From Macrostomum lignano (lineage: Eukaryota), in NCBI GenBank assembly GCA_002269645.1, contig NIVC01001658.1:1-64000 (forward strand): a stretch of DNA of 64,000 bases, read 5' to 3'. Both the position numbers and the translations under genes were made by a program. The notes beneath the pieces were generated by a model. The model saw only the letters and a program-made list of their open reading frames with translations. It had not been told where the DNA came from and ran no database searches. Below, one piece after another: positions 6,423-14,958 of the stretch; within the stretch, counting starts at the first letter, position 1; every line of letters begins with the position of its first letter.

Positions 6423-9400
6423 TCAACAGGGATTAAGCTCAAATTCGCGCAATATTTTCAAGCCTTCCAAACAGCCGAAACGTTTCAGCGTTTCGGCCAG
6501 CTGCGACACTGTGAGGCCCCGATCTCGAATCAAGTTTAGCAGGCCTTGGTGCAACAAGTCGGCAGGATTTGTGTACTGGCGCTGCAGCAACTCCAAGTTG
6601 ACAGCTGAGATGCCCAGATTCTCCAAAACCGGCCGATATTTGCTGCTCAAATCTTGAGAATTGCACAAACGTCGGGCCAGACCGGTTGTTGCAACAATTT
6701 CAGCATAGGAACGTTGCAACAATTCCACAATGTCACTCTGGTGCCCCGCTGTCACATGCTGGGACACTCTGACGGAACCGCTGCCACCGGTGGGGCGGTA
6801 AAATGACACCATTTCACCTCCAACAGTTCCAATGCTCACGGTGAAGGCTCCACTTCTTCGCTGAGGGGTGTGTGTGTGTGTGTGTGCGGTCAGTGACAAT
6901 TTGACCATCAGTGCCAATTCGACTATTAGCGACAATTAGACTGTCAGTGACAAAGTGAATACCAGTAAGAAATTGACTATCAATGACAATTAGACTCTGT
7001 CAGTGACAATTAGACTCTGTTAGTGACAATTTGGCTGACAGGGACAATTTGACCATCAGTGCCAATTCGACTATTAGCGACAATTAGACTGTCAGTGACA
7101 TAGTGAATACCAGTAAGAAATTGAATATCAGTGACAATTAGACACTGTCAGTGACAATTTGACTAACAGTGACAATTTGACTATCAGTGACAATAGGATT
7201 GTCAGTGACAATTTAACTGACAGGGACAATTTGACTATTAGGGACAAATTAAATATCAGTGACAAATTGAATATCAGTGACAATTAGACACTGTCAGTGA
7301 CAATTTGACTATCAGTGACAATTAGATTGTCGGTGACAATTTAACTGACAGGGACAATTTGACTATCAGTGACAGTTTGACTATCAGTGACAATTAGACT
7401 TTGTCAGTGTCAATTTGACAATTAGCGACAATTTGACTATCAGCGACAATTAGATTGTCAGTGACAATTTAACTGACAGGGACAATTTGACTATCAGTGA
7501 CAAATTGAATATCAGTGACAGTTTGACTATCAGTGACAATTAGACTTTGTCAGTGTCAATTTGAAAATTAGTGACAATTTGACCATCAGTGACAATTTGA
7601 CCATCAGTGACAATTTGACTATCAGTGACAATTTGAATCAGTGACAATATAACAGTAAAAGCTTACCGATGATTGGCTGGATGAAACAGACTGGTCAACA
7701 TTACCAGAGAGCCTTTCAGCCTCAGACACAGGTCGACCCTCAAACTGCATGGAAACAAGAAAGCATCGCAAGAATCATAGTATATCTTTGCACAAAAATG
7801 ATTCATAATTCAGCAACTTACGTCTGGTTGATTAGACTGATCCATCGCATTGTCCAGCTGAAATTTAAACATTTGTAGGACTGGATGTGTTTAAGCTTTC
7901 GATGTATATCAGCTTTAGTAAATAGACTTTGTAATAATTTTATGGATATTTAACACCTGTAGGATTGGGTGGGATTTTAACACCTGCGGGGATCGGATGG
8001 GATTTTGACACCTGTAGGATCGGATGGAATTTTAACACATGTGAAATCGGATGGAATTTTAACACATGTGAAATCGGATGGAATTTTAACACCTGTGGCC
8101 TGTGGGGATTGGATGGGATTTTAACACCTGCGGGGATCGGATGGGATTTTAATACCTGTGGCCTGTGGGGATTGGATGGGATTTTAACACCCTGTAGGGA
8201 TGGGATGGGATTTTAATACCTGTAGGATTGGATGGGATTTTAATACATGTAGGATTGGATGGGATTTTAACACATGTAGGATTGGATGGGATTTTAATAC
8301 CTGTAGGATTGGATGGGATTTTAACACCCTGTAGGGATGGGATGGGATTTTAATACCTGTAGGATTGGATTGGATTTTAACACATGTAGGATTGGATGGG
8401 CTTTTAATACCTGTAGGATTGGATGGGATTTTAACACCCTGTAGGGATGGGATGGGATTTTAATACCTGTAGGATTGGATGGGATTTTAACACCCTGTAG
8501 GGATGGGATGGGATTTTAATACCTGTAGGATTGGATGGGATTTTAACACATGTAGGATTGGATGGGATTTTAACACATGTAGGATTGGATGGGATTTTAA
8601 CACATGTAGGATTGGATGGGATTTTAATACATGTAGGATTGGATGGGATTTTAACACCCTGTGGGGATGGGATGTGATTTTAATACCTGTAGGATTGGAT
8701 GGGATTTTAACACCTGTGGGGATCGGATGGGATTTTAACACCCTGTGGGGATTGGATGGGATTTTAACACTTGTTGGGATCGGATGGGATTTTTGATTCC
8801 TTCTTCACTGAGCCAACAACCCAAACAAACCTCCAGAACACTGAGCTCCTCTTCAACCGGACCAAGTGACACAGTCCTCGCTCGGACCTCAGCCGACGGA
8901 ATGGTGTCAGCTGGTGGCAGCTCGCCCAGCTCATTCAGCACTCGGTTTCTCTCCCGCTCCATCTGGGTCAGGCTGCACATTCTCCACAGAGCGCTGATTT
9001 CGCTGAAAGTTGCCCGCTGCTCAGGCACCTGACAGGCCATTTTCTCCACAACAAGCTTAGTAATTTTTTGCAACTGTTCAAGATCTGCATCCCAGTTTCT
9101 CACAGGAATCTTATTAAAGAAACTATCGTCAACTAAGAGTTGAAAATCTCGAATGTGCTGTCCGATGCGTACTCTGCCTTTGAATGCTTCGATACGGTCC
9201 CCAATGACCTGACGAACGGACAGCTGACCGAATGCTTCGACTACGAACACAGCGTAGAGATACCTGTCGCCGAATATGTCCGGCTGTCTCAGTGGATCGT
9301 CGTAAGTTTCTGGCAAGCGACGTTCGACTCCACGCAGTCGCTCAAATGCTAACGTGTTCTGCGTGGCGATTGACTCCACTGTGCGTTTGGACAGGCCGAA

Positions 9401-12400: not shown

Positions 12401-14958
12401 AATATGATTAATACTGGAGCTCGATAATAACAACTTACCAATTAAACTTTCTTCGGGAAATTCTACTTCAGTGTTCCACAAAACTTCTGGCGCTTTCAAC
12501 TCTGGAGCAATCTGTAAAACAACACCGATGGTTAATTTAGAAGAGTACACCATGACTCGACAATTGATCAGCCAAAAAATGAACTCACAGATTCATTGAG
12601 CTCTTGTCGAACAAGCTTCAAAACTTCCTGACGCGCCCTCTCCATCTTGTCAGGGCTGCAGGCGCGCCAAATCTCTTTAACTTCACTAAATGAAGCCCTC
12701 TCTTCCGGGATGTGATGCGACATTATCTGTACCACTTGCAAGATTGCCTGTTTGAGCCTGTTTAGGTCTCCATCAGACGAGGCCTCTCCAACGAAACAAT
12801 TAGAATTTAATAATTGTTGAAAATAATCCACATGTTTGCCCGACCTCAATAGGTCAGTAAACTGTTGGACATTGTCACTTATCTGCTCACGGATTGACAG
12901 CTCAGTGAAGGCTTCCACAACCAGCAGTCCGTACAGATACCTGTCGCTAAACTGGTCAGGCTGTCGGATCGGATCTGAGACAGTCTCCGGCAGCTGCTTA
13001 TCAATGCCTCGCTTTTGCTCAAAGTCCAAAGTTTGTGGCGATAAATTCGCTTCCGTAAGTTTCTTTGAGAGGCCGAAGTCTGCGATCTGGGATTAGTCAG
13101 ATAAATCAGTTCTGCTATAAATTACAGATAACAAGTGTTTTACATTACTGAAGGATACATGGATGCAGATCAAACCAACTCAGTGACACACATGCAGATG
13201 CAGATCAAACCAACTCAGTGACACACATGCGGATGCAGATCAAACCAACTCAGTGACACACATGCGGATGCAGATCAAACCAACTCAGTGACACATGCAG
13301 ATGCAGATCAAACCAACTCAGTGACACATGCAGATGCAGATCAAACCAACTCAGTGACACACATGCAGATGCAGATCGAACCAACTCAGTGACACACATG
13401 CAGATGCAGATCAAACCAACTCATTCAATCCGGACACACAGGAATGCAGACAACGCACAATAACGTGTGAGTATGTTAATAGGTGTTAAGATGGATTATA
13501 AGCGAAAAAGTGTCAAAGCGAACACACCTTGATATCGAGCTGGTCATTGATTAGCACACTATCCACAGACAGATCTCTATGTATAATCGCTCCTTTTGGT
13601 CGAGTTTGCAAATAGTGGAAAGCATCTGCAATCTGGAGCATCCAGCTGGTTTTCAACCACGGATGATACAGACTATCTAGATTGCTCTGGAAATAAATGA
13701 AAAGAATGAATTATTGAAATCAATCAGCATTCAGCAATGAATAGAAAAATACTTCTATTTCAACTTATAGTTACCAATTTTGACAGATGCAAACTAAAGG
13801 ACCGAATACTGCCCAGCCGACAGTATTCCATAGTAAAGCCGGAAAGTTTAGTATCCCGACTGTACAAATGGTAAACGCTAATAAACTGTTCGCGTTCCTG
13901 ACGCAGATCGTTTAGCAGCGCGATCTCTTTTACTAAGTGGTTGACCAGCCTGGAGAAGAGAAATAAAAATGTTGACAACAATAATTTATATTGGAAGCTA
14001 AACTTTCCAATGGAAGACATTTTATGCAGGTCTTAACGAGGATATGTATTTTCTTTAGTTTTTTTTGTCAAAAGGGTTATGTTATTTGTAAGATCAAAAT
14101 ACAGGGAGTGTCATAGGCCCCAAGGGCTGGATTCCAAGTGCAGTCGCATTAATTTCGGTGCACCTTTTTTAACGATAAATAAAGTCAGGACCGCTATACA
14201 CTCGTGCGTGTGCCTGTGTGTATGACTGCGTACGTATCGGGGAGTCGATGGAATGGGCAGTAACCCAGTAATGCCTTTTGACGGTTGTGTGACAATGTCG
14301 CTTAAAGTGCGCCATGATATAGCAAAAATAATTGCTATATCATACCCCAAGTTCCGTTTTCATTAACTATTTGTTTAGATAATTTTTAAAGAGAAATATT
14401 GAAGCAAACAAATATTAAAAACTTTCAGAAACAACTAAATAAAACTCACCACTGCGTTCGACTGGCGTCGTTAAATTCGAATAACTTGACGGCCAACGTT
14501 TTCATTGTAGGATCATTTTTGAGCCAGCATCGATGCACGCTTGCAATGCTGCCTTTGCCTAACAGATAGGATTAAAACAGATAAAAAAAAGTTAGTTTTA
14601 ATTAGCATCGTGGATTATTTTAAATTCAGAAACTTAAACAGATAAACAAAAGCTAAGAAATCTAATATTTTATGCAGGTACACAACTGATATTTCGGTCT
14701 TTAATAGTGCTGATTGCAGTGAAAATTTCTAGGGAACAATTATAGAATAAATAGATAACTATATAGAAAAAATTCTCAGACCATTTGGCACTTAAATGAT
14801 AGAAAAAAACCTACTGCACTTTTGTCCTAGCTTTAGAAAAAAATGACAAAGAAGTTCATTGAAAGTTCACACAAAGTACGCATAAAAAAGTTCTTACCTA
14901 TCAACGAATTGCTGGGATATATAACGTCATTTTGCGAAGTGTTCTTTAATTTTGCCAT
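6423..14958 (-). CDS. Tandem protein kinase - protein kinase - death domain protein (886 aa, 13 coding exons; TKL/RIPK-like)
   Basis: Exons on -: 14958-14898, 14558-14450, 13949-13775, 13686-13528, 13086-12589, 12511-12439, 12340-12223, 11554-11377, 10382-10224, 9409-8831, 7857-7822, 7744-7667, 6860-6423. All junctions are GT-AG and phase-compatible; total 2661 nt. Kinase 1: GKGSIA / LAVK / HRDLSVDS / DFG. Kinase 2: GKGSFA / MALK / HRDLAVDN / DFG. The last ~105 aa form a helical death-domain-like region. Confidence 0.85.
6890..7650. repeat. Intronic degenerate minisatellite, ~18-20 bp unit (agtgacaatttgactatc)
   Basis: Direct tandem repetition visible; lies in the last intron of the tandem-kinase gene. 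Confidence 0.9.
7945..8790. repeat. Intronic minisatellite, 27 bp unit (tgtaggattggatgggattttaacaca/c)
   Basis: Tandem period of 27 nt, e.g. tgtagg at 8221 and 8248. Confidence 0.95.
9432..10142. repeat. Intronic minisatellite, 31 bp unit (gtctgtgctgtcattagcatctgacattcta)
   Basis: Near-perfect tandem copies with period 31. Confidence 0.95.
10442..11332. repeat. (GACA)n microsatellite grading into a 16 bp unit (taagacagacagacac)
   Basis: Pure GACA run from 10442, then period-16 derivative units. Confidence 0.95.
11685..12165. repeat. Intronic minisatellite, 33 bp unit (gagaatctgtctctctgctcttc(c/t)ccattc(c/t)tt)
   Basis: Period 33, which produces spurious 11-aa-repeat ORFs in several frames. 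Confidence 0.95.
13160..13425. repeat. Intronic minisatellite, ~33-35 bp unit (atgcagatcaaaccaactcagtgacacac...)
   Basis: About 7-8 tandem copies between exons 13528 and 13086. Confidence 0.9.
14115..14330 (+). mobile_element. Degenerate, internally deleted copy of the tRNA-derived SINE family
   Basis: Shares gattccaagtgcagtc, ggggagtcg..gaatgggcagtaa and gtcgcttaaagtgcgcca with the 47939 and 61164 copies. Confidence 0.75.

Follow-up and report, generated by a model that had tools for sequence, protein, structure and literature searches.

On the minus strand of a 64,000-nt stretch of the free-living flatworm Macrostomum lignano (contig NIVC01001658.1, assembly GCA_002269645.1, hereafter the window) we find a gene that joins two protein kinase domains, K1 and K2, and a C-terminal region with a predicted death-domain fold (DD) into one product through a cis-spliced 77-nt intron. 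We think it likely that this is a real, expressed gene whose 886-894-aa K1-K2-DD protein arose from a local array of kinase genes and serves as a death-domain-recruited signalling kinase.

A single spliced gene encodes both kinase domains and the C-terminal region

Rebuilding the gene from the sequence (14958-6423) gave 13 exons (minus strand: 14958-14898, 14558-14450, 13949-13775, 13686-13528, 13086-12589, 12511-12439, 12340-12223, 11554-11377, 10382-10224, 9409-8831, 7857-7822, 7744-7667 and 6860-6423, the last including the stop), with GT-AG introns throughout, a coding sequence (CDS) of 2661 nt and a product of 886 aa, and thereby reproduced exactly the coordinates, exon sizes and product of the first-pass annotation. 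A protein search matched this product with 100% identity and 100% coverage to a GenBank entry, hypothetical protein BOX15_Mlig005512g2, partial, Macrostomum lignano (894 aa, PAA65386.1/PAA47243.1), encoded on NIVC01001658.1 and on NIVC01004521.1 of the same assembly, the latter being a 99% copy. Over positions 1-24976 the window and NIVC01001658.1 have the same bases throughout. The two models differ in a 5' extension (the GenBank CDS is 5'-open from 14976) and in two amino acids at exon 9. The gene had been described as hidden behind its intron, which does not hold, as the same RNA-seq-guided fusion has been in GenBank since 2017. That annotation is not ab initio and is based on StringTie/TACO assemblies of RNA-seq together with mapped de novo transcripts; the TBONE pipeline split these at spliced-leader and poly(A) sites that had been mapped experimentally and nowhere else, and TransDecoder then called the open reading frames (ORFs) (PMC5730564). 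An AATAAA lies at 6285, 3' of the whole gene.

The difference at exon 9 falls in a tandem acceptor within a CAGCAGCAG run (10391-10380, minus strand). GenBank takes the first AG, 6 nt upstream of that used in the first-pass model, giving an exon of 165 nt (10388-10224) and the protein sequence STMQQMGGG ('QQM'); paralog models with identical DNA here take the second, middle CAG ('QM'), and the first-pass model takes the third ('M'). The choice probably reflects NAGNAG-type alternative splicing, by which 0-2 Gln are added. The paired exon sizes that had been listed for the two kinase halves (61/73, 109/118, 175/178, 159/159 and 498/579 nt) were all reproduced, but the value of 159 nt depends on the exon 9 acceptor, and since three in-frame acceptors are available the equality 159/159 is only one of three options.

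Table 1. Features of the K1-K2-DD locus and of its relatives within the window
Feature	Coordinates	Strand	Basis and remarks
5' end of K1-K2-DD mRNA	14959..14982	-	Acceptor TTTCAG (AG 14982-14981), 22 nt before ATG; fits trans-splice acceptor motif
K1 unit, exons 1-5, first kinase domain, 334 aa	12589..14958	-	Rebuilt model, Pfam, GenBank P0001
Intron 5, 77 nt	12512..12588	-	GTGAGT donor from 12588, acceptor TTTTACAG ending 12512; phase 0; K1 ...LNES to K2 IAPELK...
K2 unit, exons 6-10 (exon 9 from 10388 or 10382), second kinase domain	8831..12511	-	Rebuilt model, Pfam
C-terminal region, exons 11-13 (7857-7822, 7744-7667, 6860-6423)	6423..7857	-	Linker with TVSIG ~6842-6798; death-domain fold ~6722-6435
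K0, third kinase unit, separate gene Mlig005512g1 (GenBank)	15683..18769	-	tblastn with the kinase N-terminal to K1 in P0002/P0003
Gene X, divergently oriented paralog	23602..26467	+	tblastn: tail E=4e-10 (26% identity to this tail), C-lobe E=2e-6

The K1-K2 junction

The locus can be read as two genes because of what lies within intron 5: a read-through stop (TGA 12570-12568) and an ATG at 12553, both of which the first-pass annotation had taken from the ORF track and both of which are present in the sequence. Its proposal that donor 12588 and acceptor 12512 join ELNES to IAPELK in frame is borne out by the rebuilt and the GenBank models. Enumeration of GT/AG pairs in the K1-K2 stretch returned 21 that keep the frame open, so that in-frame joinability by itself is not evidence for the junction; 12588/12512 is, however, the sole pair of the 21 that fits the species consensus at both ends (GT[G/A]AG and [T/C]TNCAG), and it is also the pair of the public models. 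The LNES/IAP junction (slashes mark intron positions) is found in four GenBank models on separate contigs, P0001, P0055, P0056 and P0057. In the three paralogous models besides that of this locus, Mlig009930 g2 and g3 (each located on another contig) and g5 (from a contig of 43.8 kb), it reads LNES/IAPD[LV]K. Across the paralog copies intron 5 measures 77, 80 or 79 nt and the read-through stop is kept in all. Exon 6 has no ATG in any frame and the first in-frame Met of K2 comes after the Gly-rich loop, so K2 cannot form a complete kinase by itself. We regard the fused K1-K2-DD mRNA as well supported and very probably real, and with it the central claim of the first-pass annotation, a single spliced kinase-kinase-death domain gene, which finds support in the RNA-seq-guided GenBank model and in the paralog models that share the junction.

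The main rival to this reading is an operon. Genes of M. lignano are often spliced-leader trans-spliced (~30%), 15% lie in operons with an intercistronic distance mode of ~100 bp, the motif [T/C]TNCAG is enriched at spliced-leader sites, and the leader, CGGTCTCTTACTGCGAAGACTCAATTTATTGCATG, has ATG as its 3' end (PMC8629364). K1 would then end at the stop at 12568, and a K2-DD mRNA, as the main or a minor product, would be trans-spliced to the leader at 12512 and start from the leader's ATG (M-IAPELK...). The acceptor, TTACAG, fits the enriched motif and the 77-bp spacer compares with the operon spacing mode. Against this, a consensus cis donor, GTGAGT, stands 77 nt upstream of the acceptor, the spacer holds no AATAAA or ATTAAA that could serve the 3' end of K1, and TBONE, which cuts at mapped leader peaks, left the junction intact in models at four loci, each on a different contig; the upstream cis donor, the missing K1 poly(A) signal and the uncut annotation all speak against K1 and K2-DD as an operon pair. 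The leader's ATG is in frame with K2 at exon 6, for which the odds by coincidence are one in three. On balance we consider the operon quite unlikely.

We hold it most improbable, to the point of being hardly credible, that K1 and K2-DD are two independent genes, the first ending at 12568 and the second starting from the ATG at 12553 under a promoter of its own. In the window and in copies L002 and L003 that ATG shares the frame of K2, but the 15 nt between stop and ATG leave no space for a 3' untranslated region, a poly(A) signal and a promoter, and every RNA-guided model splices the stretch out. In copy L004 a 1-nt deletion shifts the ATG out of frame and the spliced junction is still annotated; L004 may hold assembly indels, and we rejected this intron deletion as strong evidence because the L004 contig also has an exon indel.

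Two kinase domains with different catalytic loops

The product is a tandem protein kinase with two domains above the Pfam gathering scores (PF00069/PF07714), Pkinase scoring 150.1 bits (gathering 31.7) and PK_Tyr_Ser-Thr 146.3 bits (gathering 23.1), each over two stretches. The catalytic loops on which the first-pass annotation had drawn, HRDLSVDS in K1 (13581-13558) and HRDLAVDN in K2 (10277-10254), are both present. In the alignment K2 has the Gly loop GKGSFA, the beta3 Lys, the alphaC Glu, HRD, the Asn and DFG; K1 keeps LAVK, HRD, DFG and the other core motifs, and its catalytic-loop Mg-binding Asn is changed to Ser in all paralog copies. By the common three-motif definition a pseudokinase lacks the beta3 Lys (VAIK), the catalytic Asp (HRD) or the Mg-binding Asp (DFG), or more than one of them; K1 keeps all three and is therefore not a pseudokinase in this sense. 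From established kinase biochemistry, a domain without the Mg-binding Asn would be expected to show impaired or unusual catalysis.

Both domains are under purifying selection. Between paralog copies K1 shows 11 synonymous and 9 non-synonymous differences (pN/pS 0.22, range 0.16-0.31, binomial P=0.001) and K2 shows 4 and 2 respectively (P=0.03). The pairing of a regulatory K1 with a catalytic K2, as had been suggested, is plausible; K2, which has every catalytic residue, would be the phosphotransferase, and K1, constrained but without the Mg-binding Asn, would act as a regulatory or scaffolding partner in the manner of JAK JH2-JH1 and of plant tandem kinase proteins.

The nearest solved relatives are TK/TKL kinases, with RIPK2, RIPK1, IRAK and plant RLK prominent among them. 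In searches of solved structures a single sequence left PLK4, RIPK2 and BRI1 tied at ~4e-8, and the family profile placed FGFR3, CSF1R, JAK2 and PLK4 on top at ~1e-19. Foldseek with the K2 model listed RIPK2, SOBIR1 and RIPK1 first, and its matches also include IRAK3, IRAK4 and plant RLK/Pelle kinases, but this model is poor and so its RIPK-rich ranking is a hint only, which we left out of the family assignment.

A probable death-domain fold at the C-terminus

Three independent weak lines converge on a death-domain fold at the C-terminus, which we consider highly probable. Firstly, Pfam Death (PF00531) matches with E=0.0098 and 16.4 bits over profile positions 13-84 of 86. Secondly, an AF2 model built from two sequences gives a helical bundle (pLDDT 75-92) for the last ~95 residues, and the best Foldseek matches of this bundle in the PDB are almost all death domains, namely those of FADD, Fas-FADD, TNFR1, RIPK1, p84, RAIDD, ankyrin and IRAK (TMt 0.6-0.71, root mean square deviation 2-3 Å, probability 0.98-1.00), FADD, TNFR1 and RIPK1 scoring best (TMt 0.69-0.71, probability 0.99-1.00). 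Thirdly, a profile of three family tails has the Pelle death domain as its first match (E=0.016). A single tail (183 aa) run with phmmer against PDB sequences gave chance matches only, and Pfam Death has no match in the paralog tails. The C-terminal death domain of the first-pass annotation therefore stands as regards its fold and its profile match to Pelle, and falls short as a Pfam assignment, its score being below the gathering score.

About 35 aa before this fold lies a TVSIG motif (6842-6798, minus strand), predicted as a beta-hairpin at low pLDDT. The motif is kept in Mlig029749, a single-kinase gene of the same family, as PTVSIGKVLGNVY and is degenerate (TISIS) in gene X. It resembles the RHIM core (I/V-Q-I/V-G), but Ser replaces Gln and the downstream Asn is absent; Pfam RHIM has no match in the tail or in the isolated linker. 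The hairpin may be a RHIM-like amyloid motif.

Through its death domain the protein would be recruited into homotypic death-fold assemblies, as RIPK1, IRAK and Pelle are, and the likely setting would be innate-immune or cell-death signalling. Our best guess at function is a death-domain-recruited signalling kinase, RIPK1-like in domain order and plant-tandem-kinase-like in concept.

Probable origin from a tandem array of kinase genes

The two kinase units share their exon layout with intron phases 0,1,2,0,0, their introns interrupt corresponding residues (a Gly in LIG/KGS, a Trp, and /IADFG), and the domains are 47% identical over 321 aa (E=8e-108). The first-pass annotation had taken the shared layout as direct evidence of intragenic duplication. 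The duplication itself is upheld by these observations, but a third unit, K0, shows that it was not purely intragenic. K0 consists of five exons (minus strand: 18769-18700, 18596-18473, 18386-18212, 17760-17605 and 16495-15683; 70, 124, 175, 156 and 813 nt), again with phases 0,1,2,0,0 and with introns at positions homologous to those of K1 and K2, and the alignment shows HLD, the Asn and DFG. Its last exon encodes an acidic tail that ends in a stop codon of its own, with no death domain and with an ATTAAA at 15501. That K0 shares the layout and yet has a stop to itself argues for tandem gene duplication followed by fusion.

In GenBank K0 is modelled as a 341-aa protein, Mlig005512g1, starting after an in-frame TAG (18334-18332) that is present in this K0 copy; K0 is intact in copy L003, and copy L004 has a different nonsense codon (codon 37). 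The paralog model P0057 starts in K0 exon 3, in another frame, and is spliced in cis to the acceptor 22 nt upstream of the K1 ATG, so K0 and K1-K2-DD must be co-transcribed at least sometimes. This raises the question as to whether K0, K1, K2 and the death domain form one protein, as in the older-assembly UniProt/WormBase-type A0A1I8… models P0002 (1080 aa) and P0003 (902 aa), which join K0 exons to K1 and K2. Such a triple fusion also has the P0057 splice in its favour, but that splice is out of frame for K0 and meets a stop after 17 codons, the last K0 exon reaches its own stop at 15683 followed by ATTAAA, and GenBank annotates K0 separately; we consider it very unlikely. P0002 and P0003 were rejected as mis-joined: several exons are skipped and K1 exon 2 is read in the wrong frame, as is typical of ab initio errors.

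All three units open with a [T/C]TNCAG acceptor on the minus strand, at 18781/18780 for K0, 14981/14980 for K1 and 12512/12511 for K2. The distance to the ATG is 11 nt in K0 and 22 nt in K1, and in K2 the acceptor is the start of exon 6, with no ATG. The leader's terminal ATG, in frame at the K2 acceptor, is out of frame for K0 and K1, where it would give short upstream ORFs. The last exon of K1 (498 nt) is shorter than that of K2 (579 nt), which in turn is shorter than that of K0 (813 nt), and the consensus donor of K1 is without counterpart in K2 and K0.

From these features we infer the following route to the fused gene. At the outset the kinase(-DD) genes, namely gene X, K0, K1 and K2-DD, would have stood side by side in a local tandem array, each opening with a spliced-leader-type acceptor shortly before its start codon. 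At the truncated 3' end of K1 a consensus GT donor would then have arisen, turning the K1-K2 spacer and the K2 acceptor into an ordinary intron, and the start codon of K2 itself would have been lost. Conrad 1993, as cited in PMC8629364, holds that trans-splicing predominates at an acceptor only if no cis donor lies upstream of it, and under this rule gain of the donor would convert the spacer into an intron. The 77-nt spacer is close to the ~100-bp intercistronic mode of M. lignano operons.

An unlikely, though conceivable, extension combines several of these features: conversion of outron to intron would still be in progress, acceptor 12512 would be used both in cis and in trans, and TVSIG would be RHIM-like. 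If so, one locus would give K1-K2-DD by cis-splicing or K2-DD from the leader ATG, i.e. a kinase with or without its regulatory partner, and a truly RHIM-like TVSIG would make the protein an analogue of RIPK1 in a flatworm, from a phylum in which FADD and CRADD are reported to be absent (PMC11463336).

Distribution, paralogs and the weight of the evidence

HMMER, run exhaustively over 1.84 billion representative proteins, gave only four matches below 1e-30. Three of them are from M. lignano (the self cluster, an ankyrin-linked paralog and a single kinase-DD paralog) and the fourth is an unrelated repeat artefact, so that no relatives outside M. lignano were found among the representatives. Elsewhere in the genome Mlig029749 encodes a single kinase of the same family in the same kinase-tail order. 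In the annotation of a sister branch, Mlig024686 (P0004, P0005, P0061 and P0213), the kinase, at 40-43% identity, is joined both to ankyrin repeats and to another kinase domain that is unrelated. A caspase with a kinase-like prodomain has also been described in M. lignano (PMC11463336), and its kinase was not among the close matches of the HMMER search. M. lignano thus seems prone to joining kinases with cell-death-type modules. In the literature we found no description of these locus tags, this protein or its architecture, and the earlier impression that the architecture is unusual stands.

Several points weigh against a functional K1-K2-DD gene. The support for the junction is second-hand, coming through the provenance of the RNA-guided annotation, and with the leader's ATG in frame at exon 6 a K2-DD-only product is possible. 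No APE motif is recognisable in K1 or K2, and the K2 loop HRDLAVDN resembles the tyrosine-kinase HRDLAARN without its Arg and is also without the Ser/Thr-type Lys, so that K2 itself may be atypical or inactive. The K2 AF2 model, from a five-sequence alignment, has a mean pLDDT of 63 with the N-lobe below 50. The Death score of 16.4 bits lies under the Pfam gathering score of 22.6 bits, and the Foldseek E-values of the death-domain matches are 0.1-1. No relatives outside M. lignano turned up among the representatives with which the function of the family could be compared. Finally, some copies of the array are disrupted, K0 by nonsense codons (window and L004) and K2 exon 10 in L004 by a 1-nt deletion that truncates P0056 to 672 aa; these changes could reflect independent decay of redundant copies or PacBio assembly errors.

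Such changes, together with the degenerate catalytic core of gene X, the atypical catalytic and activation segments and the lack of orthologues outside M. lignano among the 1.84 billion representatives, would fit a decaying lineage-specific cluster, in which the fused transcript exists but is a transcribed pseudogene or a neutral fusion. The K1-K2-DD frame is nevertheless intact over 886 codons in three of the four copies, synonymous changes are in excess in K1 (P=0.001) and K2 (P=0.03), and K2 retains all core motifs. Decay of this kind we regard as improbable, and we retain the reading of K1-K2-DD as a working gene, an unusual but lineage-specific variant of the death-domain kinases.

Comparison with known systems

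In the order of its parts the protein resembles RIPK1 (kinase, intermediate region with RHIM, death domain), the kinase lying on the N-terminal side and the death domain at the very C-terminus. Among the best fold matches of the M. lignano tail is the death domain of RIPK1 (6ac5, TMt 0.69), RIPK1 and RIPK2 also rank high with their kinase domains in the sequence and fold comparisons, and the TVSIG hairpin is located where RIPK1 has its RHIM (GIQIGA, PMC4262963). Unlike RIPK1 the protein has two kinase domains rather than one and no Pfam RHIM, with the substitutions in TVSIG described above, and the family profile matches tyrosine kinases and PLK4 as readily as RIPKs. With IRAK and Pelle it shares a death domain and a TKL-like kinase in one chain, and the Pelle death domain is the best solved-structure sequence match of the tail profile; in IRAK and Pelle, however, the death domain is N-terminal to a single kinase, whereas here it forms the C-terminal ~95 residues and only ~20 residues precede K1. 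DAPK1 likewise combines a kinase with a death domain on the C-terminal side, with ankyrin and ROC-COR parts between them, and the M. lignano sister family (P0004, P0005, P0061) joins the same kinase type to ankyrin repeats, but DAPK is CAMK-type with a calmodulin-binding segment, and neither feature was found here. The order of a non-canonical kinase followed by a canonical one is that of JAK, and JAK2 JH1 is among the top profile matches; JAK differs in having FERM-SH2, for which the ~20 aa before K1 leave no counterpart, and in being without a death domain, and K1 retains the Lys, the HRD-Asp and the DFG-Asp.

Plant tandem kinase proteins (TKPs), such as wheat and barley resistance proteins, are associated with innate immunity and carry two kinase or pseudokinase domains in one polypeptide, from duplication or fusion of neighbouring kinases, with one domain often non-canonical (PMC13519141). 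Theirs are plant RLK-Pelle-derived and have no death domain as characterised, whereas the present protein is from an animal, a flatworm, and any immune role is putative; the likeness is analogous, not homologous.

Death-domain kinases such as RIPK1, IRAK and Pelle act as hubs in innate immunity and cell death, and among plant immune receptors the tandem kinase proteins have recently been recognised as a class. If our reading is true, an animal would have arrived independently at the tandem-kinase idea, on a death-fold scaffold, by combining two duplicated kinases and a death domain in one protein, and the locus would illustrate the fusion of tandem duplicates in a trans-splicing genome, in a species that supports transgenesis and RNA interference. 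The lineage adds context, as flatworms (Platyhelminths) are reported to have lost FADD and CRADD (PMC11463336). The importance of the gene is limited by its model being already public and by a family confined to one species in current databases; what we add to the public model is a cryptic death-domain fold, the trans-splicing context, and an array of three units that accounts for the origin.

Gene X, intron repeats and other features of the window

Gene X has a degenerate kinase C-lobe in which WDGEVTTDC replaces HRDLxxDN and no HRD or DFG is recognisable, and it has a death-domain-like C-terminal ORF. Its GenBank model of 404 aa has no Pfam domain and ends at a TAA (25901-25903), seemingly inside an unspliced intron. 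Removal of this putative intron, with donor G/GTAAGA at ~25893 and acceptor TTAG/CAGCAAAA at ~26021, would append in frame the death-domain-like ORF running to 26467.

The long introns of the K1-K2-DD gene are each filled by their own unrelated minisatellite (13162-13423, 11678-12162, 10443-11334, 9436-10142, 7944-8793 and 6890-7648, with units of 35, 33, 16, 31, 27 and 18 nt respectively), in 8-57 copies with 76-96% matches that make up most of the intron length. The arrays vary between paralog copies, intron 4 measuring 441 nt here and 1209 nt in L003. GC-rich insertions lie at 16600-17600 (minus strand, K0 intron 4) and at 22400-23000; an ORF at 22538-22939 carries a reverse-transcriptase-like 'YADD' motif, from which the insertions are probably retroelement fragments. 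A repeat with a 15-nt unit at ~24100-24650 encodes PLVLK/GAKAP-type repeats in several frames and recurs at ~41900-42500.

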